A program made the position numbers and the translations under genes. From sequence record OK040170.1: DNA of 64,000 nt; one strand, given 5' to 3'. The notes beneath the pieces are model-generated. The model had not been told where the DNA came from. It ran no database searches and was given only the letters and a program-made list of their open reading frames with translations. Below are positions 6,667 through 61,091 of this stretch, in pieces; within the stretch, counting starts at the first letter, position 1; each line of letters starts with the position of its first letter.

Positions 6667-8718
6667 ATGGTTGACTTAACCAAAGACGCTAAACTCATTG
6701 CGATTGACCTCATCAATGAAGCTAACGGAACTAACTTTACCGATAAAACTATCGCGTTGTCAGGGCCGGTTGTAAACAACTTCGTGTTGAACGGTCTGAA
6801 TACGGAAGTTACTGCTTCGCCTAACGCAGGTGATAGCAATGACATTCCGGTAACTACTTATTATTCCCGTCTCCATCTGAACCATTTGCTGGAACGTCCT
6901 TACGCCGCCTTAGAGAACCAAGCACCTTCTCGCCTGGCTGGTTTACTTCCTTCTATCAACGCTAAGTATCGCCTCGGTCTGACCGCTGCAGATATCGTTG
7001 ATGGCCCGTATCGTCCTGACGATGTAGCGACTGGTATTCGTCACGTTCAGATCGAAGCTAACCCGAACAGTTACGGTTACATCGGTAAGACTGACATCTA
7101 TCTGGGTGATAGCGCTCTGGTAGCCGATTGGTTTGAACGTCCTCATTATCAGTTCTCTCGTGACTTCGGCGCAGTTACCTTCATGGGCAACAGCTATAAC
7201 TTCCCTGATACCGATATCCGATTCGCTGGCCCTATTCAGACTATTACTCTCAATAGCCGGATCAAAGCTGTGAGCATCGATACTGACCGCCAATACCGTG
7301 CTTTCGAAAGCTACCCGGTAAACGGTACGTTGGTTGCGCACTTCAATAACGGCGTGATGAAAGAGATCGTTGGTAACCGTGGCGAAACGAGCTACGATGA
7401 AAACGGTATTCTTCTGGATATCATGCCGGATCTCCCTTCCTTCATGGACAACATCCACGAAGATGTACGCATCCTCAAATCGTACGGTAACGGGAACATT
7501 ACCTACAGCACCGACTACGACGTAGGTAAGCGAAAGGCAACTTCTGGTTTGACTTACTACGTTGATAACGTAGCAGGCAACGATCAGAACGATGGTCAGT
7601 CGGAGGGTAAAGCATTCAAGTCGTTTAACCGTGCATTGATGGCAACTCCTGCTGCCCGTATCATCATGGTCAAAGGGACGGATGTTTATTACGATGCCAA
7701 CAACGGCTGGACGAGTTCAGTTAATAACCGTTCTCTGGACGTCATCGGCTTCGGCCCTAAAAAGCCTATCTTCACGGCGACCGTAAACGACCTCACCTGG
7801 AAACAGCAAAGTGAGTCCATGTGGTATACCGACCGTATCCGTTTGGCTGCCTTCGTTGACATGAACAACGTAACGCTGGCCGCTGGCCCAGTCCGTATGA
7901 CCGCTGCTAAGACGCTGGACGACTGCCGTATCAACCAGTCTACCTATTACTTCGACAACGTGTCTGGTCGTACTTACGTTCACTTGTTTGACGATCGTCA
8001 ACCAGATGACAAAGTTCTGGGTATCATGGCAAGTAACTCTGGTCGTACCGAGAACGGGTCTACTGTTTACATGGAAAACCTTCAGTTCCAGTACACTTAC
8101 CGTGGCTTCCAGACTGAAATCACTCAGGCTAAAGTAGTTGGGTATCTGTACGCTAAGAACTGCGACTTCGGCTGGAGCTGGACTGATGCTGGTCTTAACA
8201 GCTGGGGTACTAACGTTGTTACTCAGGGCTGTACCGCTCAGTGGTGTCAGCGTGGCGGTTTCCGTTATAACTCAGACCGCGTAACTCCAACCATGGGTAT
8301 CAAACCTTGGGTTGTTGAAATCGGCGCAGTTGTTAAGCAGTGCGGTTTTGACGGTACTGGTCAGGGCGTAGGTTCCGGTATCTCCGGTAACGTAACTATC
8401 ATGCGTATTGGCGGTAGCTATTCTGATTGCGAAGGTAACTTCGTTCAGGACACCGGTGACAATACCTACTCGCTCAACCTGAGTTTGACTACGTTTAAAT
8501 CTCGGTGGAATAACCCAGATGCGGCCGCGTACACTAACGGCCTGAACTCAGTGCGTGCAGCAGTTGCACATTACTGGAGCTGCACTATGGACAGCAGCGC
8601 TTTGTCTATCTATCCGAAAGGCAAAGGTCAAGCGTTCTTGCACAACACGTTAGTAGGTGCACGTCCCTGCTACCAGCGCGAAACGCCGTATCGTTTTATT
8701 TACACTAAGAAAGGGTAA
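6667..8718 (+). CDS. Virion structural / tail-associated protein (phiKZ-like N-terminal module plus beta-helix)
   Basis: 683 aa. 'YYVDNVAGND...GKAFKSFNRA' beta-helix cap motif. Paralogous along its length to 8729-10795. Confidence 0.65.
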   Translation: MVDLTKDAKLIAIDLINEANGTNFTDKTIALSGPVVNNFVLNGLNTEVTASPNAGDSNDIPVTTYYSRLHLNHLLERPYAALENQAPSRLAGLLPSINAKYRLGLTAADIVDGPYRPDDVATGIRHVQIEANPNSYGYIGKTDIYLGDSALVADWFERPHYQFSRDFGAVTFMGNSYNFPDTDIRFAGPIQTITLNSRIKAVSIDTDRQYRAFESYPVNGTLVAHFNNGVMKEIVGNRGETSYDENGILLDIMPDLPSFMDNIHEDVRILKSYGNGNITYSTDYDVGKRKATSGLTYYVDNVAGNDQNDGQSEGKAFKSFNRALMATPAARIIMVKGTDVYYDANNGWTSSVNNRSLDVIGFGPKKPIFTATVNDLTWKQQSESMWYTDRIRLAAFVDMNNVTLAAGPVRMTAAKTLDDCRINQSTYYFDNVSGRTYVHLFDDRQPDDKVLGIMASNSGRTENGSTVYMENLQFQYTYRGFQTEITQAKVVGYLYAKNCDFGWSWTDAGLNSWGTNVVTQGCTAQWCQRGGFRYNSDRVTPTMGIKPWVVEIGAVVKQCGFDGTGQGVGSGISGNVTIMRIGGSYSDCEGNFVQDTGDNTYSLNLSLTTFKSRWNNPDAAAYTNGLNSVRAAVAHYWSCTMDSSALSIYPKGKGQAFLHNTLVGARPCYQRETPYRFIYTKKG

Positions 8719-26625: not shown

Positions 26626-26910
26626 ATGGCAAGGTCAGTTCTCTTTATCGCAATCCCGGTTATCGTTGTCACCGCTGTTGGTTATTACCAAAACCTCACT
26701 GCAAACACCAAGATCACATCGGAGATCGAATCGATGGGATACAAAGGGGTTAACTTGATGCAGCGTACCATGGACTGCTCAAGGGGTTATAGCGGGGAGA
26801 TCTTCACCGGGACTAGCGAAAAGAATGAACGTGTCTATGCAGCTTTCTGCACAGCAGATAACCAACCTCCGTTCATCGAGGTGATCCGTAACTCTGGAGA
26901 AATAAAGTGA
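26626..26910 (+). CDS. Membrane-anchored exported protein with a Cys pair
   Basis: N-terminal TM/signal segment; 'DCSRG...AFCTAD'. Confidence 0.65.
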   Translation: MARSVLFIAIPVIVVTAVGYYQNLTANTKITSEIESMGYKGVNLMQRTMDCSRGYSGEIFTGTSEKNERVYAAFCTADNQPPFIEVIRNSGEIK

Positions 26911-36925: not shown

Positions 36926-37359
36926 TGTTTTCACCCATGTTCGAGATGATCGGTAACTTCCTCAACGGTTGTCCTCGGTCTTTCATCACTACCGACGGTT
37001 CAGTGACGCTGGAAGAAATGAAAGGGTGGTTTGGTAACGGTTACAATATCGTTGTTTTTACTCCCCCGGAAGATACTTCCAAATCACGTTCTTACCTCGC
37101 TAAGATGTTTGAGCAGGACGCCGCTGAATTAGAAAGCGAAGAAGGTGAGAATAAGATTTACTTCTACGAGTCAGAGGAAACCGACAGCTATCTGGATATG
37201 GCTATTCTGGTTTCCACCGACGCGTTGGTTGAGTTCTCTCGTTACATTGATGTTGACGACAAGAATTTCAGCTACATCAACGCTACCATCAAAAAGTGCC
37301 GTGGTTACGAATCTTACGGTAAAGTCACGCTACAACTACCAATGGGGTATCCGCTGTGA
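36925..37359 (+). CDS. Hypothetical acidic protein
   Basis: TAATG coupling. Confidence 0.7.
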   Translation: MFSPMFEMIGNFLNGCPRSFITTDGSVTLEEMKGWFGNGYNIVVFTPPEDTSKSRSYLAKMFEQDAAELESEEGENKIYFYESEETDSYLDMAILVSTDALVEFSRYIDVDDKNFSYINATIKKCRGYESYGKVTLQLPMGYPL

Positions 37360-37748
37360 TCGAATACGTTATCTCAGAAACACATATCACTGACAAGACA
37401 AAGAAACGCCTGAGTGAACAACTCGGCGAAGGTCGGGAGATTACTGCGGTTCTCTCCTTCGATCAGTCTTACGTCATGGAACGTAAAGGCCCTGACTTTT
37501 CTGGTCTGCTGGTAATCACCGGGCCACTGCTGGAATACCATATCTTCCGTAAGGTCGGTATGAAGTTCGTTCATGCAGGAGCCATGAAAACCTCCATTTC
37601 AACCGTGTCACTCAGCGATGATAACTACAACGCGATGGCCGGTCTGGGAGTGGAGGATAAACTCACCGCTCTTTCCCATAAGGTCAAAGAGCTCCACCCA
37701 CATATCCTCGCTTACTTTAAGACGGAGGAAATGAAAGGAGTACTCTGA
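37356..37748 (+). CDS. Hypothetical protein
   Basis: GTGA overlap. Confidence 0.65.
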   Translation: MIEYVISETHITDKTKKRLSEQLGEGREITAVLSFDQSYVMERKGPDFSGLLVITGPLLEYHIFRKVGMKFVHAGAMKTSISTVSLSDDNYNAMAGLGVEDKLTALSHKVKELHPHILAYFKTEEMKGVL

Positions 37749-38137
37749 TGAAGAAGTTGATCATCGGCGTTGTTGCGTTGATGCTGGCGGTTTCGTTCAG
37801 CATCTCGTTTAGCTACGCAAAAGATCCGGTCGTGTTCCGTGAGGGCTATATCTTCGAAGCTATATTCACGGGCGACGTAGTCCACGTTAAAACTTTTGAC
37901 TCCGGGGTTAATTGTACTTACGATAGTCGGGTTGATAACGTAGACGAGTTCGAAGGTAAATACTACACGATGCGGTACAGTTGCTGGATCATTCCTGCCA
38001 AGTACTTTAACAGCGTTCATCTGACTTACTACTACGACTCGGACACCTTTAATCTGATCTATCGGAGAAATTCGAAAGGAGAGATCATTTACGAAGGGAT
38101 TTGGGCCGCTAAGGATGTGCTCGATGTACGCCAGTAA
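37748..38137 (+). CDS. Secreted two-Cys protein (paralogue family member 1)
   Basis: Signal peptide ending SYA; C-x23-C with 'GKYYTMRYSC'. Confidence 0.75.
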   Translation: MKKLIIGVVALMLAVSFSISFSYAKDPVVFREGYIFEAIFTGDVVHVKTFDSGVNCTYDSRVDNVDEFEGKYYTMRYSCWIIPAKYFNSVHLTYYYDSDTFNLIYRRNSKGEIIYEGIWAAKDVLDVRQ

Positions 38138-38510
38138 AGCTCTCCTTGATCTGGAGGGGATACAGGTGCTACAGGTTGACAAGGAAGTCAATCTCCGTAC
38201 GCTAGTGAGCTATTACCCCGTACCTGACGCTCGGGATATTCTCCGCGCAATAGGTCACCCTTGGGTGGAAATAAAGAGCGACTATCGATCTATCTTCTAC
38301 TGTACGCTACGCAAAGGCACAGACCAGAAGCGGTCGTTCATGGATTCGGCTAAGGTGAATAGTTTCTTGAGCAAAGCCAAGGTCGAGGGTAAGGGTGCAT
38401 TACTCATCGTCCGCGGTTCACTGGTCTATTCAGAGGCCAAGGAAGGCGTTAAACGTAAAGTGCGAGTCTACCGTAATCAACTGGGAAATATAACGGAAGT
38501 GCTATTGTGA
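38115..38510 (+). CDS. Hypothetical basic protein
   Basis: RBS AAGGA before GTG; overlaps both neighbours. Confidence 0.55.
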   Translation: MCSMYASKALLDLEGIQVLQVDKEVNLRTLVSYYPVPDARDILRAIGHPWVEIKSDYRSIFYCTLRKGTDQKRSFMDSAKVNSFLSKAKVEGKGALLIVRGSLVYSEAKEGVKRKVRVYRNQLGNITEVLL

Positions 38511-38779
38511 TGAAACCTTCAAGTAAGAGTATTATCATTTCGTGGGTGGTGGCGATCATGTATATTCTTTACATCGTTGCCCTGATGGTATCGCCATTAC
38601 ATTGGCTACCGTGGATCATCGTTGTTCGAGTGATTCCTTTTATTGGTATTTGGCTCTACGATCGTTACAAGGGAAATAAAGCCCACGGGTTCTTCTCGTA
38701 CGTGCTTATGCCGCAAGGTATACTGTCCATAGCGATCTTAAACTTCAAACAGGATGTCAAGTACGTCTTTGGCAAATAA
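38507..38779 (+). CDS. Membrane protein
   Basis: 2-3 hydrophobic helices. Confidence 0.65.
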   Translation: MMKPSSKSIIISWVVAIMYILYIVALMVSPLHWLPWIIVVRVIPFIGIWLYDRYKGNKAHGFFSYVLMPQGILSIAILNFKQDVKYVFGK

Positions 38780-38790
38780 ACACAGAGAAG

Positions 38791-38818
38791 CTCTCCTAGG
38801 GATTATTCCCTAGGAGAG
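38791..38818 (+). terminator. Terminator hairpin
   Basis: CTCTCCTAGGGA-TTAT-TCCCTAGGAGAG. Confidence 0.7.
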
Positions 38819-38822
38819 TCCT

Positions 38823-38861
38823 ATTATATCCATTTCCAATTTTTTTGGTGTCTATATAACC
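38823..38861 (+). repeat. 39-bp block identical to 61793-61831, containing an early-type promoter
   Basis: ATTATATCCATTTCCAATTTTTTTGGTGTCTATATAACC at both sites. Confidence 0.85.
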
Positions 38862-38919
38862 AGCGCGAAGGTCTATAGTAAAACCTTCTTTTCAAACGTT
38901 ACAATAAAGGATTATAAAG

Positions 38920-39438
38920 ATGTTAAGTTCCCTGAAGAAGTGGGCAAAGACCGTCGTCTTTAACTACCGGGCAGATAAAGCCTGGGGTTCGGATGATGAA
39001 ACTAAAATGGAGTATCTCGCTGCTATTAGAGCAATGGATTTTTGGAAGTTCAGAGAGATGCGTTTTTTCACAAAGATGGCCACCGAGGACTTTGTTAGGG
39101 TACATAATCTTACCGATCCTTTAAAGATAGCTGATGGATCAATGTTGGTCCATCGCTTACTCTCCAAGTCGACATTCAGTGCGGCGCTTAAGGTGCTCGG
39201 TATACTCTCCATATACTACACCTTCCCGGTAGAAGGGGCTGTTCTTGGTACGTGTGCATTATTAGCTCACATACGCTTCTTGTACGTAAGAGAGCTGAGA
39301 TACTTAACTATCAAGATAATCCTGGAAACTGAACATAAAGAGTTGGACGGTTGCACCCGTCCAACTCTGGCTACGTGTCTTAAATCATACGTGGTTCGGA
39401 TTAAACCAATTATAAAAAGGAGGTTAGGACTTAACTAA
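38920..39438 (+). CDS. Hypothetical membrane-associated protein (AT-rich codons)
   Basis: RBS AAGGA; first gene after the promoter. Confidence 0.7.
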   Translation: MLSSLKKWAKTVVFNYRADKAWGSDDETKMEYLAAIRAMDFWKFREMRFFTKMATEDFVRVHNLTDPLKIADGSMLVHRLLSKSTFSAALKVLGILSIYYTFPVEGAVLGTCALLAHIRFLYVRELRYLTIKIILETEHKELDGCTRPTLATCLKSYVVRIKPIIKRRLGLN

Positions 39439-39444
39439 CTCCGC

Positions 39445-39478
39445 TAACCGGGTCAGGTTATGATCCCTGGCTCGGTTA
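39445..39478 (+). terminator. Long hairpin with G-U pairs
   Basis: TAACCGGGTCAGG-N8-CCTGGCTCGGTTA. Confidence 0.6.
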
Positions 39479-39533
39479 CATACTAATTTAAAATACGTAA
39501 AAAATTACTTACTTACTTAAAAAGGAAACTATA

Positions 39534-39854
39534 ATGAAAACAATCATTACCGTACTAACTACTGTTCTTATTGCAACTGTACCTTTCCTTCCTAAAGCGG
39601 AAGCAAGCAACGTCTACCATACCGACAAAGGTGTTACATTCACCATTGATGGTAAGTTAGCAGAAATCGAACAAAACGGTAAAGTCACCAAGTGTGCTTT
39701 GGTAATCAGTAAAGATGCCACCTCTGCCTGGAAATGCAGCAACGGCAAGCAGCTCTGGATTCGTAACAAGCCGGAAAGTGAACTGATCACGTTCGCTATC
39801 TTCGATCTGAAAGATGACTACCCGGACTTCATTGATTCGGTTCTGAAGAAATAA
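39534..39854 (+). CDS. Secreted two-Cys protein (family member 2)
   Basis: Signal peptide ending AEA; 'TKC...AWKC'. Confidence 0.75.
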   Translation: MKTIITVLTTVLIATVPFLPKAEASNVYHTDKGVTFTIDGKLAEIEQNGKVTKCALVISKDATSAWKCSNGKQLWIRNKPESELITFAIFDLKDDYPDFIDSVLKK

Positions 39855-39928
39855 CCAAAATTACGGAGGGGTTATCCCCTCCTCTAATAACTAAATACAA
39901 ACACTTTAAACTTAAAAAGGAAATAACA

Positions 39929-40381
39929 ATGAACCCGATCCAACACCTCAAAAAATTCGTTAAGTCAGACGTAGAAGGTCATGCTTTCATCGCGCTATCT
40001 GATTCACCTTTCCAGACCGCAATTGTAAAATGCATTCTTGGGAACGAATTCGGTGAAGCGTTTGAATTGGCCAAGGCTAATAAAAACTCATTCAAATTCT
40101 TCGAAATAAAAGAACAGAAATATGCCGTAGTGGTGGCCAACGAATACGACTTCACAACCTACATGGACTTACCTGGACTAGTGAACCTGGAAACTGAACT
40201 GGGAACTCGCGTAATCGTCTTTGGAGAGTATGCCCAAGGCGAAGTGCTGGGTAACCTGTTAATCGCTGTTGGGGCTTCCTGGTACGGTTTTACGGCGCCA
40301 TGGAAACATCACAACGATGCTCTCCATTATGTCACTTCCAGATATGCCGGTTGTGAAATGGCTCAGTGCAAAATTGCTTAA
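39929..40381 (+). CDS. Hypothetical protein
   Basis: RBS AAGGA; flanked by hairpins. Confidence 0.7.
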   Translation: MNPIQHLKKFVKSDVEGHAFIALSDSPFQTAIVKCILGNEFGEAFELAKANKNSFKFFEIKEQKYAVVVANEYDFTTYMDLPGLVNLETELGTRVIVFGEYAQGEVLGNLLIAVGASWYGFTAPWKHHNDALHYVTSRYAGCEMAQCKIA

Positions 40382-40450
40382 CAAACTTTACTAGGGGACA
40401 TGTTCCCCTAGTTTATTCTCACTTGTCCCAATCTTAATTAGGAAAACCAA

Positions 40451-40810
40451 ATGAAACTCATCCACGCTATCTTCGCTATCGCTCTTCTGACTTTTGCTGG
40501 TTCTGCTTATGCTAACAACTATCGTCTGTACGATGACTACAGCAATGAGATTACTCTTCGCGGTAACCTGCTGAAAATTAAGAACGACGCACACGGCGGT
40601 GTTACTCGTTGTACCTTCAACGAAAACATCACGGGTAAAGAAAGTGATGGTACAACTTACCGTGGCGCTAACTACCTTTGTGGTGGTAAGATGTGGGCTA
40701 CCTTCACCACTAACCAAGAACGTCACACTGTAGAGGTTAGCGTCTTCCTGTACAAAGATACTCTCTACACCAAAGAACTGCCGCTGGCTGCTCTTGAACT
40801 CATCGACTAA
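40451..40810 (+). CDS. Secreted two-Cys protein (family member 3)
   Basis: Signal peptide ending AYA; 'TRC-x22-C'. Confidence 0.8.
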   Translation: MKLIHAIFAIALLTFAGSAYANNYRLYDDYSNEITLRGNLLKIKNDAHGGVTRCTFNENITGKESDGTTYRGANYLCGGKMWATFTTNQERHTVEVSVFLYKDTLYTKELPLAALELID

Positions 40811-40828
40811 TCAATAAGGCAATCTGAC

Positions 40829-41170
40829 ATGAACCGTTTTATCATCGTATTACTGGCTTTGATTTCTTTTAGCGCTTATGCTGACACCACGACCCTTAGT
40901 GAGGGAACTGACTTTAATGCCGTGATCGGTGATAAAACCTCAGTCGTTAATTACGACGACCAGACCCTGTATTGTGAATTAGAGAAGACCAGCCGGGAAC
41001 TCGATTCAGAATACGGCAAGTATCAACTGAAACTCTATAGCTGTGGCGCCAACATCATGTTCGCCCACAAGACCTACGACAGCCAACCTTTCACGCAAGC
41101 TATCATCGGTGACAAGGCAACCAATGTAGTTTACTACAGCAACTACTTCAATAAGGAAACAACTAAATGA
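40829..41170 (+). CDS. Secreted two-Cys protein (family member 4)
   Basis: Signal peptide ending AYA; 'LYC...GKYQLKLYSC'. Confidence 0.8.
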   Translation: MNRFIIVLLALISFSAYADTTTLSEGTDFNAVIGDKTSVVNYDDQTLYCELEKTSRELDSEYGKYQLKLYSCGANIMFAHKTYDSQPFTQAIIGDKATNVVYYSNYFNKETTK

Positions 41171-41532
41171 AATTCGTTATCGCGTTATTCGTAGCCGTAC
41201 TGTCCCTGGCGTCTTTCTCTGCCAATGCAAGTCTGATCCATATGAGCGATGCACCTGAATACGATTTCGTAGTAGGTGACACTACTGCTCGGGTCAAAAA
41301 CCTGCAAACCAATAAAACCTCTCGCTGTACGCTGATGTACAATGACAACGGTATCGATAAAGATAACCTCGTCTACGTCGTTAGCTTCTTCCAATGCGAT
41401 GCAGGATTCGAGCTGATGGCCAAGATCACAACCGAGAACGGCAACATCATCGTAGCCATGATTCGTAACGGTGCCAATAAAGAGTTCTATCGCAAGTACG
41501 CTCCTAAAGGTACTTGGGTTGTCATGAACTAA
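41167..41532 (+). CDS. Secreted two-Cys protein (family member 5)
   Basis: Signal peptide ending ANA; 'SRC...FFQC'. Confidence 0.8.
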   Translation: MKFVIALFVAVLSLASFSANASLIHMSDAPEYDFVVGDTTARVKNLQTNKTSRCTLMYNDNGIDKDNLVYVVSFFQCDAGFELMAKITTENGNIIVAMIRNGANKEFYRKYAPKGTWVVMN

Positions 41533-41651
41533 ACCGATCCCTCTACCTATCCGGGTAGGGGGATTATTTTACGTATTACTCTTTTATTTTTTATGAACGC
41601 GAAACGTTTCTGAACTCCCCCGTTTCAGAAACCTCTTAATCTCCCGCTAAG

Positions 41652-42698: not shown

Positions 42699-43010
42699 TT
42701 GTTTTGTCTAATAAGGAGATTCGTTGTGCCCCGTTTACTTACGTTGATTGTTCCGATTTATGCTGCTGCACTTACTTATATTTTCTCAGTGATCTACAAA
42801 GACCTCAGTGAAGATACACTCATGGTTATTACTACGCTGGGTTTCTCCGGAGTAGTCGTTTGCATTATGCTTTATAGCTACGGTATCTTCCGTAGTACGA
42901 ATCGCCTCAAGGCGTGGCTGGAGAAAGGGTACTTGGATTACCTGTCGATGATCCCAAGTATTTCATTCGCCGTTTCATTAACGATCCTTTTCTACATCAT
43001 GGACATTTAA
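42699..43010 (+). CDS. Membrane protein
   Basis: Three hydrophobic segments. True start is probably the GTG just after RBS AAGGAG. Confidence 0.6.
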   Translation: MFCLIRRFVVPRLLTLIVPIYAAALTYIFSVIYKDLSEDTLMVITTLGFSGVVVCIMLYSYGIFRSTNRLKAWLEKGYLDYLSMIPSISFAVSLTILFYIMDI

Positions 43011-43011
43011 A

Positions 43012-43341
43012 ATGATAGAGTATATTCGTTCTGAGAATTTCCTGTCTGGCTTTTACTTCGTTCTCTTCGTGATGTCAACCTTCACGTTCATCGGGATTCG
43101 TCACTCTGAAGTCATTGGTCAGTTGACTAGAGCGACGACTTGGGTGTTGGTCGCAGCTGGTCTTATGACTATCTTTGGTTTTGTGGTTATCGCGCCCATT
43201 ACCGAAGACTGGAGTCATCTCGGCTTCCTGCCCTTCACTTCGTTCCTCGGTTACGTTGTAGCCAGGGTCACTACGTCGATGGAGAACGAGAGAGTCGATA
43301 ACAAGTCTAAACGACGGAGCATTCACCATGCTAAAGACTGA
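43012..43341 (+). CDS. Membrane protein (3 TM)
   Basis: Hydrophobic profile. Confidence 0.7.
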   Translation: MIEYIRSENFLSGFYFVLFVMSTFTFIGIRHSEVIGQLTRATTWVLVAAGLMTIFGFVVIAPITEDWSHLGFLPFTSFLGYVVARVTTSMENERVDNKSKRRSIHHAKD

Positions 43342-43627
43342 CCAAAAATACCCGCGTCGTGGCGGGGCGGTAGAGAACTTAATCTACCTCGTGCAATTCG
43401 TGGTGGTTGTCTTTGGGTACTTCCAGTTCTTGGTTGAACCTGAAGACATTTACAACCAACTGGTCTTTATTTTCATTGCGTCGATTATCATTGAGAATCT
43501 GGCAGTACTGTGGATTCTCCGTGCTAAGATCGTTACCTCGGTCACTAACGCAGTTATCTGGTGTGCGTTGGGATCGGTTCTGGGTTGTGTTATTACGGCC
43601 TGGTACTTTGAGGTATTCACGCTTTAA
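43328..43627 (+). CDS. Membrane protein (3 TM)
   Basis: RBS GGAG; hydrophobic profile. Confidence 0.7.
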   Translation: MLKTDQKYPRRGGAVENLIYLVQFVVVVFGYFQFLVEPEDIYNQLVFIFIASIIIENLAVLWILRAKIVTSVTNAVIWCALGSVLGCVITAWYFEVFTL

Positions 43628-59605: not shown

Positions 59606-60127
59606 ATGAACATTGAAAACTTCAAGAAAGACTTTGCTGAAATCGCTGACAAATTCAAAGTGATGTACGGTCACTTCAATCCAGAGAAGACTCGTCCAGA
59701 TCTGGATATCAACAACGGTGACTGTGGCGTATTCGCACTGGCTGTCGGTGCAGTACTCCAGAACAAAGGTTACAGTATCCAGTACGTAGATAACCTCAAC
59801 CACGGCTTCATTCGTCTTTACGACGTCGATGAAGACCTCTGCTTCGACAGCAACAACTACGAAGGTTGTTCCACTGCTGACATGAATGAGCGTTGGAGTT
59901 CGGATGAAATCAATCCGCTTGACTACAACGGCATGTGCGATGCATTTGTCCCTTACGACGTTAAGGGTGCGTACATGATCAAAACAATCCTGGATCATTA
60001 CTCGGTCCCATTGCCAGAGTATATCCAGAACGTACTCAAAGAAGAACTCGAATACGAGATCACCGAGTACGTTGAGAAATACCAAGTGTTCATGGCTCGG
60101 TCTATCGAAGAAATGAACGCAGCGTAA
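59606..60127 (+). CDS. Putative papain/transglutaminase-like Cys-His-Asp enzyme
   Basis: 'NNGDCGVFA...NHGFI...CFDS' order; first gene after an early promoter. Confidence 0.45.
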   Translation: MNIENFKKDFAEIADKFKVMYGHFNPEKTRPDLDINNGDCGVFALAVGAVLQNKGYSIQYVDNLNHGFIRLYDVDEDLCFDSNNYEGCSTADMNERWSSDEINPLDYNGMCDAFVPYDVKGAYMIKTILDHYSVPLPEYIQNVLKEELEYEITEYVEKYQVFMARSIEEMNAA

Positions 60128-60218
60128 CCCTGAGCAATTCCGCTCGACACCCCGGCCGTAGTTCTCACAGGTCAATAGCGACACTCGTAGAGGCTACGGT
60201 TTTTAGGAGAGTAGTACG

Positions 60219-61091
60219 ATGAAAACAACTGTAAAAGAGTTAACCAAAAATGTCTATCTGGTCACCTTCGATCTGTTCGAGGCCAGTAGAATGATGAACA
60301 TGTCCTACTCGGATATGCAATCGTTATTCTGCCAACTGCGTAACATGAACGTCGGTAAAGATGACATGTATGGTCGGGTTATTAACAACCACCAACGTGC
60401 TCAGTACAACGGTCATGACCACTACGACTTCACTTGCTCACCGGACTTCATAATCCGGACAAGTGGTATCCGCATGGATAGCGAAGAGGCTATTGTCTCT
60501 ATCAAGTTGGAAGTACTTAACGAACACGCGTTCCCTGCCTCTGCTGCTGAATTCGCTACCTACTTTAACGAGTACGGTTGGCGCTTCGTACCACGTTGCT
60601 TCTACGTGAACTACGAAGTCGAGGATGCTAAGTTTGAAAATCCAATTCGCTCTTACGTCGGTCAGCCGAAAGAACTGCCCAAAGGCTGGGTTAAGGACGA
60701 AAACGTCAACTATAGAACCATCGATATTTGGATCGATGACGAAACTGGTACTGAGCTTGGCGAGAATCCAGATGAAGATATCGGCGTGTCGGATTCCGAC
60801 GAGCGTAACCCGGTAATCATCGTCGATCAGACCCATTCTGAAATCATCAAAATGATGCTCTGCTCCGGTTATAATTTCTCTACTGTCATCGACGGTAAAG
60901 AAGTTCATTTCGAAATCACCGGGCCTAAGGACAATTCAAATAACCCTTACGCAGCAAAGTTGGATGAGCACTGTAAAGATCTGAAAGGTTCCTTCAAACA
61001 GAAGGAAGGTTATGTCGGGCCGACCTTTACGCCGGAACAACCAAAACACGTCCCCAATGATCCAACTAGAAGTATGTGGGGGCCAGAATAA
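60219..61091 (+). CDS. Hypothetical protein
   Basis: RBS AGGAG; 290 aa; contains 'WRFVPR...TIDIW'. Confidence 0.7.
   Translation: MKTTVKELTKNVYLVTFDLFEASRMMNMSYSDMQSLFCQLRNMNVGKDDMYGRVINNHQRAQYNGHDHYDFTCSPDFIIRTSGIRMDSEEAIVSIKLEVLNEHAFPASAAEFATYFNEYGWRFVPRCFYVNYEVEDAKFENPIRSYVGQPKELPKGWVKDENVNYRTIDIWIDDETGTELGENPDEDIGVSDSDERNPVIIVDQTHSEIIKMMLCSGYNFSTVIDGKEVHFEITGPKDNSNNPYAAKLDEHCKDLKGSFKQKEGYVGPTFTPEQPKHVPNDPTRSMWGPE

Follow-up and report, generated by a model that had tools for sequence, protein, structure and literature searches.

Few bacteriophage proteins are directed to the periplasm of the infected cell, and only a handful of them (Spackle, Imm, Cor and Llp) are understood. The subject of this work is a set of five small genes found between positions 37748 and 41532 of a 64,000-nucleotide stretch (hereafter, the window) of sequence record OK040170.1, the 272.7 kb genome of Serratia phage BUCT660, of the genus Moabitevirus, in which window position 37000 corresponds to position 223000 of the record. 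Their products share a signal-type leader, a pair of cysteines and a small beta-type domain, and an initial annotation made from the sequence had presented them as diverged paralogues exported to the periplasm.

Two kinds of described proteins provide the closest terms of comparison. The first is T4 Spackle, a periplasmic inhibitor of the incoming tail lysozyme that excludes superinfecting phage (PMC7677548), so that the export by a phage of a small disulfide-bonded inhibitor of tail lysozymes has a precedent, albeit one with a helical fold. The second is the group of lysozyme inhibitors formed by ACP, MliC and PliC, eight-stranded barrels with a disulfide between strands beta1 and beta8 whose loop 4, connecting beta4 and beta5, enters the lysozyme cleft (PMC5507604); MliC and PliC add to this scaffold one motif on loop 4, SxSGAxY, and another on beta6, YxxxTKG (PMC5507604). 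A periplasmic PliC-like barrel devoid of the SGxxY motif, PhiA, occurs in Brucella and has been proposed to control an endogenous peptidoglycan hydrolase.

Five paralogous genes and their predicted exported products

Judged from profile comparisons, the five genes are true paralogues of a single family, of which the open reading frame (ORF) starting at 39534 represents a diverged subtype. Since pairwise identity among the five proteins is just 23-32%, paralogy was tested with profiles of the mature domains only, whereby the leaders were kept from driving the result. When hidden Markov models (HMMs) that each left out one member were run against the 367 ORFs of the window, each long form came out top among the ORFs not included in the profile (E 1.6e-7 to 5.4e-4; specifically, 1.6e-7 for ORF 40829, 5.4e-6 for ORF 40451 and 5.4e-4 for ORF 37748), and ORF 39534 also ranked first, with a marginal E of 0.054. 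Alignment with hhalign of the 39534 subtype (3 sequences) to the rest of the family (20 sequences), with no shared sequences and with the leaders removed, yielded P 8.9e-6 and a probability of 83% with both cysteines in register, while reversed-sequence controls gave P 0.13-0.21; an earlier hhalign comparison of the subtype with a family alignment (probability 98.7%) was discarded as circular, given that this alignment includes ORF 39534 itself and that leaders were present on both sides. The paralogy advanced in the initial annotation is therefore upheld by the leave-one-out HMMs and by the clean hhalign test alike. The 39534 subtype carries about nine fewer residues between its cysteines, a trait that recurs in Totoro and in a metagenomic relative.

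The members of the family and the terminator-like elements of the locus are as follows.

37748..38137, + strand: family member 1, 129 aa; leader of 24 aa ending SYA; Cys56 and Cys79
39534..39854, + strand: family member 2, 106 aa, short-hairpin subtype; leader of 24 aa ending AEA; Cys54 and Cys68
40390..40412, + strand: terminator-like hairpin followed by a T-run, directly upstream of the tandem trio; a terminator is annotated at the same place in Moabite
40451..40810, + strand: family member 3, 119 aa, opening the tandem unit; leader of 21 aa ending AYA; Cys54 and Cys77
40829..41170, + strand: family member 4, 113 aa; leader of 18 aa ending AYA; Cys49 and Cys72
41167..41532, + strand: family member 5, 121 aa; leader of 21 aa ending ANA; Cys54 and Cys77
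41536..41565, + strand: terminator-like hairpin that ends the tandem unit, upstream of phoH; a terminator is annotated in Moabite

The coordinates, the size range of 106-129 aa (129, 106, 119, 113 and 121 aa in gene order, all on the + strand) and the single layout ascribed to the five ORFs all hold, as do the leaders ending in A-x-A or SYA, the 38-50 aa that extend C-terminally from the second cysteine, the GKY-x4-YSC string common to ORFs 37748 and 40829, and the arrangement of three genes in tandem (40451-41532) with the other two (37748 and 39534) nearby. Two details had to be amended. Each protein does have exactly two cysteines, with 13 residues between them in ORF 39534, but the spacing is 22 in all four long forms rather than 22-23; likewise, an aromatic residue does precede the second cysteine in five of five proteins, but two positions ahead of it and not immediately adjacent. 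Member 1 has an insert of 5 residues past the second cysteine that its Totoro orthologue shares, members 4 and 5 overlap by 4 nt at the stop of the former, and ORF 39534 stands as a unit of one gene, after which comes a hairpin at 39865-39882. A scan for sigma-70 promoters returned 7 against 7.9 expected in shuffled sequence, which is not above background, and the intergenic regions of the array have no obvious promoter motif in common.

Every member of the family is predicted to encode a Sec-exported product that is not a lipoprotein. Leaders were judged by a crude heuristic and by inspection (basic N-terminus, uncharged hydrophobic core, small residues at -3/-1), and by this measure all five window proteins and all 23 aligned family members possess a Sec-type leader. 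No lipobox cysteine occurs in the five window proteins or in any of the 23, and a lipoprotein role for the family was rejected on that account; exactly two cysteines are found in the mature part of every one of the 23. The mature domains span 82-105 aa and are acidic to neutral, with isoelectric points (pI) of 4.6-6.5. The crudeness of the leader assignment leaves some room for the alternative that the N-terminal hydrophobic segment stays uncleaved and that the proteins are membrane-anchored or associated with the virion, all the more so as the preprint on the phiKp24 structure gave no virion proteomics on the homologue in FBKp24. Nevertheless, 23 of 23 leaders end with small -3/-1 residues after a basic N-terminus and a hydrophobic core, the leader is modelled with low confidence and apart from the domain (see below), and the genes sit among phoH, thymidine kinase and AAA ATPase genes, outside the structural module, all of which makes an uncleaved anchor improbable.

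Genome-wide, about 10 annotated genes of BUCT660 pass the crude Sec-signal filter, and 5 of them are these family members. Three more small ORFs (window 26626-26910 and record 59948-60355 and 251538-251981) pass the filter and have two mature cysteines each; none of the three matches the family profile. A six-frame scan of the whole 272.7 kb finds exactly five members. Moabite and Haymo have a sixth between the equivalents of 40810 and 40829, directly upstream of member 4, which matches the family profile with P 1.3e-6, and the divergent Moabitevirus Totoro has six members too.

Predicted fold and comparison with lysozyme inhibitors

Two members of the family, ORFs 41167 and 39534, were modelled with AlphaFold2 run with the family alignment, which gave a predicted local distance difference test score (pLDDT) of 89.1 and a predicted template-modelling score (pTM) of 0.76 for the former, and a pLDDT of 87.7 and a pTM of 0.72 for the latter. 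In both models the leader scores low (pLDDT 52-62) and stands clear of the domain, and the mature domain, with values above 90, is all-beta, in keeping with the beta-type sequence noticed at the outset; it consists of eight antiparallel strands in the same order, with a short ninth strand in ORF 41167. Both models place the first cysteine early in the long beta4 strand and the second where beta5 ends, with identical register (strands 50-63 and 69-77 hold them in ORF 41167), so that a disulfide between the two would staple the beta4-beta5 hairpin at its base. This hairpin is about nine residues shorter in ORF 39534. In terms of the comparison of mature folds suggested in the initial annotation, the two modelled members have the same strand order and cysteine register, although the likeness of ORF 39534 to the main family is partly built in because its alignment is dominated by the main family. 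Across 17 non-redundant members of the main family, conservation is concentrated in beta4, the turn and beta5, with the cysteines at 100% and positions 62, 64 and 70 (ORF 41167 numbering) at 76%, 88% and 88%, and the remaining domain is highly variable. In the models, the sole conserved and putatively stapled element would occupy the same topological position as the inhibitory loop of ACP, MliC and PliC.

The lysozyme inhibitors, with which the proteins had been compared on the grounds of size and disulfide, turn out to be the best structural lead. In a Foldseek search with the ORF 39534 model, the top three matches in the PDB were the ACP of N. meningitidis (5my7), the ACP of N. gonorrhoeae (6gq4) and the PliC of Brucella (4mir), in agreement with the HHpred note to ACP that stands in the Moabite record. 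The three matches are weak, with a probability of 0.99-1.00 but E 0.07-0.08, template-modelling (TM) scores of 0.47-0.54 and root-mean-square deviations (rmsd) of 4.2-5.0; the top match to ACP has E 0.069, TM 0.49/0.54 and rmsd 4.7 over 90 columns, and the match to PliC, obtained with this model only, has TM 0.47-0.51 and E 0.08.

Several results weigh against reading the family as a branch of these inhibitors. In the case of ORF 41167, neither ACP, MliC or PliC nor any other lysozyme inhibitor is among the top 50 PDB matches of the model, no PDB match falls below E 0.14, and the geometrically best match is 3fyf, an uncharacterised protein from Bacteroides (TM 0.55); for neither model is there a Foldseek match at E 1e-3 or better. 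Sequence profiles find no relative in the PDB, and the HHpred match to ACP reported by the annotators of Moabite was not reproduced by phmmer and profile searches of PDB sequences, which never returned ACP at E up to 10. The beta1-beta8 disulfide is absent, the sole two cysteines sitting on the adjacent strands beta4 and beta5. Regular-expression searches find neither SxSGAxY nor YxxxTKG in the five proteins, and relaxed forms of the motifs match one of them only, ORF 37748. None of the five window proteins matches the Pfam family MliC at E up to 1, and a Pfam scan of all 23 family members matches no family, MliC included. The short-hairpin subtype, from which the match to ACP derives, lacks the conserved hairpin tip. 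Finally, the in vitro test of PhiA on the target proposed for it gave no inhibition, an indication that the fold alone is not predictive of inhibition. Given the relocated disulfide, the absent motifs and the lack of a Pfam match, the proteins are not members of MliC/PliC or of ACP by the features that define those groups, and the models would make them at most a distant structural variant of the ACP/MliC/PliC theme.

Set side by side, the proteins are predicted to resemble Neisseria ACP in being small, in carrying a Sec signal without a lipobox, in having eight antiparallel strands and one disulfide, and in lacking the MliC/PliC motifs; they differ in that the cysteines of ACP are 83 residues apart (Cys38-Cys121, beta1-beta8) as opposed to 13-22 here (beta4-beta5), and in that ACP is a bacterial, surface-exposed protein whereas the present ones are phage-encoded. 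With MliC and PliC they would share, according to the models, a periplasmic eight-stranded barrel whose inhibitory beta4-beta5 loop corresponds to the element conserved here, while disulfide topology, both motifs and the Pfam match set them apart. PhiA likewise combines a PliC-like barrel with the lack of a lysozyme-binding motif, a likeness that for the present family comes from the models, but it keeps a long-range disulfide (Cys76-Cys154) and is a tetramer. As regards Spackle, the closest precedent in functional terms for the role proposed here, the resemblance (in small size, phage origin and, by prediction, periplasmic location, a cleaved signal and one disulfide) does not go beyond that proposed role, as Spackle is an alpha-helical bundle and evolutionarily unrelated; searches of the PDB and of viral folds with the models did not return it, and a relationship to the Spackle family was rejected because the family fold is all-beta.

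The same structural searches bear on the possibility that the proteins are calycin- or lipocalin-like periplasmic barrels whose ligand is a small molecule (a lipid, a muropeptide or a cofactor, for instance). Fatty-acid-binding proteins, lipocalins, LolA and beta-lactoglobulin do account for many of the low-ranking Foldseek matches, but with TM scores of 0.25-0.47 and large rmsd; moreover, 82-105 aa is small for a calycin that encloses a ligand, and conservation falls on the protruding hairpin and not across barrel-lining positions, so that we regard this possibility as highly doubtful.

GenBank names both ORF 39534 and the extra copy of Moabite 'putative lysozyme inhibitor', a label whose source, for ORF 39534, is the HHpred note to ACP in the Moabite record. 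The label rests on a weak fold match, and the defining features of the inhibitors are not found in the proteins; should they prove to have another role, the name would be spreading in GenBank on thin evidence, and caution is due.

A possible role against peptidoglycan-cleaving enzymes

We tentatively favour, as a possibility that falls somewhat short of being probable, the view that the family comprises periplasmic binders or inhibitors of peptidoglycan-cleaving enzymes that act through the hairpin. Under this proposal the infected cell would release the proteins into its periplasm, and there the cysteine pair would form a disulfide holding the beta4-beta5 hairpin rigid, and the hairpin might then bind peptidoglycan-cleaving enzymes much as the beta4-beta5 loop of ACP, MliC and PliC does in the cleft of lysozyme. 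The likeliest targets would be lytic transglycosylase domains of the SLT type, either those that related incoming phages carry on their tail proteins, whose inhibition could result in a Spackle-like exclusion, or that of the endolysin of the phage itself, whose inhibition could restrain premature damage to the wall; several diverged copies might serve to cover several enzyme variants.

Both kinds of candidate target are encoded by BUCT660 outside the window. A 'putative tail lysozyme' of 2,213 aa (record 149797-156438, - strand) has an SLT domain at residues 1854-1970 and hence represents a virion-borne lytic transglycosylase. The annotated endolysin (record 7109-7777) also has an SLT domain, and its N-terminus passes the signal-peptide heuristic, which suggests that it may be an endolysin of the secreted or signal-anchor-release type; the paper on Moabite identified no holin. 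The SLT domains are strongly basic (pI 9.8-10.4) as opposed to the mature family proteins, a predicted contrast in charge that is compatible with inhibition but weak as an argument. To be set against this choice of target is the fact that Ivy and MliC have just a weak inhibitory effect on lytic transglycosylases.

BUCT660 belongs to the nucleus-forming kind of jumbo phage, as its genes for a tubulin-like protein, for split multisubunit RNA polymerases and for subunits of a virion RNA polymerase indicate, and 2050HW is named in the paper on PCH45 among the closest relatives of that nucleus-forming phage. A narrower form of the proposal may accordingly be formulated, in which the family would consist of inhibitors of SLT-type lytic transglycosylases that present a stapled hairpin on an ACP/PliC-like barrel, the Moabitevirus genes constituting a panel directed at the tail enzymes of competing nucleus-forming jumbo phages. 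In this specific form we consider the proposal quite unlikely.

Export signals and a rigid, conserved hairpin would fit any protein-protein contact, and the match to the inhibitor fold is weak, so that a different kind of partner has to be weighed as well. The proteins might bind a non-enzymatic target in the envelope (the periplasmic face of a receptor or the route of DNA entry), or be immunity-like proteins that counter an envelope-acting effector, the envelope being altered without inhibition of any hydrolase. Tsi1 (4fgi), an immunity protein of the type VI secretion system, is in fact among the low-ranking structural matches (TM 0.34), and the region encodes many small predicted membrane proteins. 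On the other hand, no known exclusion or immunity family is matched in NCBIfam or PADLOC, the proteins are not lipoproteins whereas Cor and Llp are, and the lysozyme inhibitors are the only coherent cluster among the structural matches. We judge a non-enzymatic target to be somewhat unlikely, and the distribution of the family, discussed next, also bears on it.

Distribution, turnover and genomic setting

The initial annotation had taken the family to be undescribed, a view that does not stand in view of the GenBank label on ORF 39534 and of PHROG 5474, a catalogue entry with no function annotation that matches 20 of the 23 aligned members (best E 6e-14). Four of the five window proteins match it, with E from 3.9e-7 (ORF 40829) to 7.5e-3 and with 9e-5 for ORF 37748; the entry thus covers the main family, and the short-hairpin subtype (ORF 39534 and its orthologues) falls outside its direct matches. 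Scans of Pfam, NCBIfam and PADLOC gave no credible family for these proteins; stray matches to Ibs toxin, GLPGLI and Cor were rejected as driven by the leader or far below the cut-offs.

A search with a profile of the five mature domains returned 16 matches at E <=1e-3 among 1.84 billion representative proteins, several long proteins among the 16 being spurious repeat proteins, and word-indexed homologue searches with ORF 40829 and ORF 39534 returned only the cluster of the query itself in each case. Single copies are located directly upstream of phoH in the Klebsiella jumbo phage FBKp24 and in one metagenomic phage contig. With the FBKp24 protein as query, tblastn found 13 phage records (FBKp24, Centimanus and Klebsiella jumbo phages of the KpLz type), and relatives are present in 76 further phage records, including Phapecoctavirus and phages of Dickeya, Salmonella, Shigella, Enterobacter and Yersinia, as well as in two mobilizable plasmids of Aeromonas. 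In the inspected copies from Phapecoctavirus and plasmids, 22 residues likewise separate the cysteines, and the N-terminus of the phage copy is of signal type. Proteins of Klebsiella phage Menlow and Escherichia phage Mt1B1_P17 were added by the fold search of viral models. Altogether, around a hundred sequenced large phages of enterobacteria carry the family, which the inspected records call 'hypothetical'. Many large enterobacterial phages have a single copy and expansion to five or six copies is confined to Moabitevirus; the family is therefore catalogued, widely distributed and uncharacterised, and expanded in this genus only.

The family also moves on mobile elements other than phages, for two metagenomic contigs (L007:1270-1635 and L015:2812-3174) have a member directly downstream of genes for a resolvase and for a MerR/HTH_17 protein, and Aeromonas plasmid pY47-1 (L017:2848-3279) has one in the vicinity of genes for partition and toxin-antitoxin systems. 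For single copies found on plasmids or beside resolvase genes it is less easy to see a phage-specific enzyme as the target, and these speak in favour of a non-enzymatic partner.

The claim that the set is fast-diverging holds over the long term and fails among close relatives. For neighbouring genes, identity between BUCT660 and Totoro is 67-80% (72% for the AAA ATPase, 80% for the 39929 gene and 67% for PhoH), as compared with 69% for ORF 41167, the best-conserved member (Totoro_01200), 50% for ORF 37748 (Totoro_01280), 36% for ORF 39534, 29% for ORF 40451 to the best Totoro gene and 21% for ORF 40829, which has no clear orthologue. Member identities of 21-69% against those of the neighbours imply that the interior of the array turns over, with gain and loss of copies. 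In comparisons with the close relatives Moabite and 2050HW, conversely, 39 synonymous and 8 non-synonymous differences were counted over the five genes, equivalent to a ratio of non-synonymous to synonymous differences per site (pN/pS) of 0.057; no positive selection was seen among these relatives but purifying selection instead, and the five genes are therefore maintained and in use. As regards copy number and diversification, for which a profile search had been suggested, there are thus five to six copies in Moabitevirus and no sign of ongoing diversifying selection.

Some neighbouring genes have peculiarities of their own. The gene at 39929-40381 (150 aa), which separates ORF 39534 from the tandem trio, has the highest conservation of the neighbourhood with respect to Totoro (80%), and with 15 non-synonymous and 11 synonymous differences from Moabite it is a local anomaly. 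Within ORF 38920-39438, whose 172-aa product is hydrophobic in its C-terminal half, a segment of about 400 bp (38905-39306) is present as a highly divergent allele in 2050HW, with flanks 97-99% identical, and, to judge from read-out of coverage, in ParM-25, Kodama and Yaphecito as well; pS and pN for the entire gene are 0.65 and 0.43, and this looks like a recombinational swap of one gene that is situated between family members. Small ORFs with multiple membrane-spanning-like segments flank the array and phoH (38507-38779, 42699-43010, 43012-43341 and 43328-43627), the last three in tandem directly after phoH; the first is annotated in BUCT660 with a later start (38558, giving 38558-38779) than in Moabite (38510-38779), the region being identical. 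With these membrane-type ORFs and five exported proteins, the neighbourhood is predicted to be unusually rich in envelope-directed products.

That one genus of jumbo phages has five or six copies beside phoH suggests a role that rewards variety. If the inhibition of lytic transglycosylases is true, these proteins would reveal how nucleus-forming jumbo phages protect the wall of the infected cell from rivals or from their own exported endolysin, and they would represent a new structural solution within the ACP/MliC/PliC theme, in which a relocated disulfide staples the inhibitory hairpin. The family would then stand as a beta-barrel counterpart of T4 Spackle and as the first inhibitor family against virion lytic transglycosylases.

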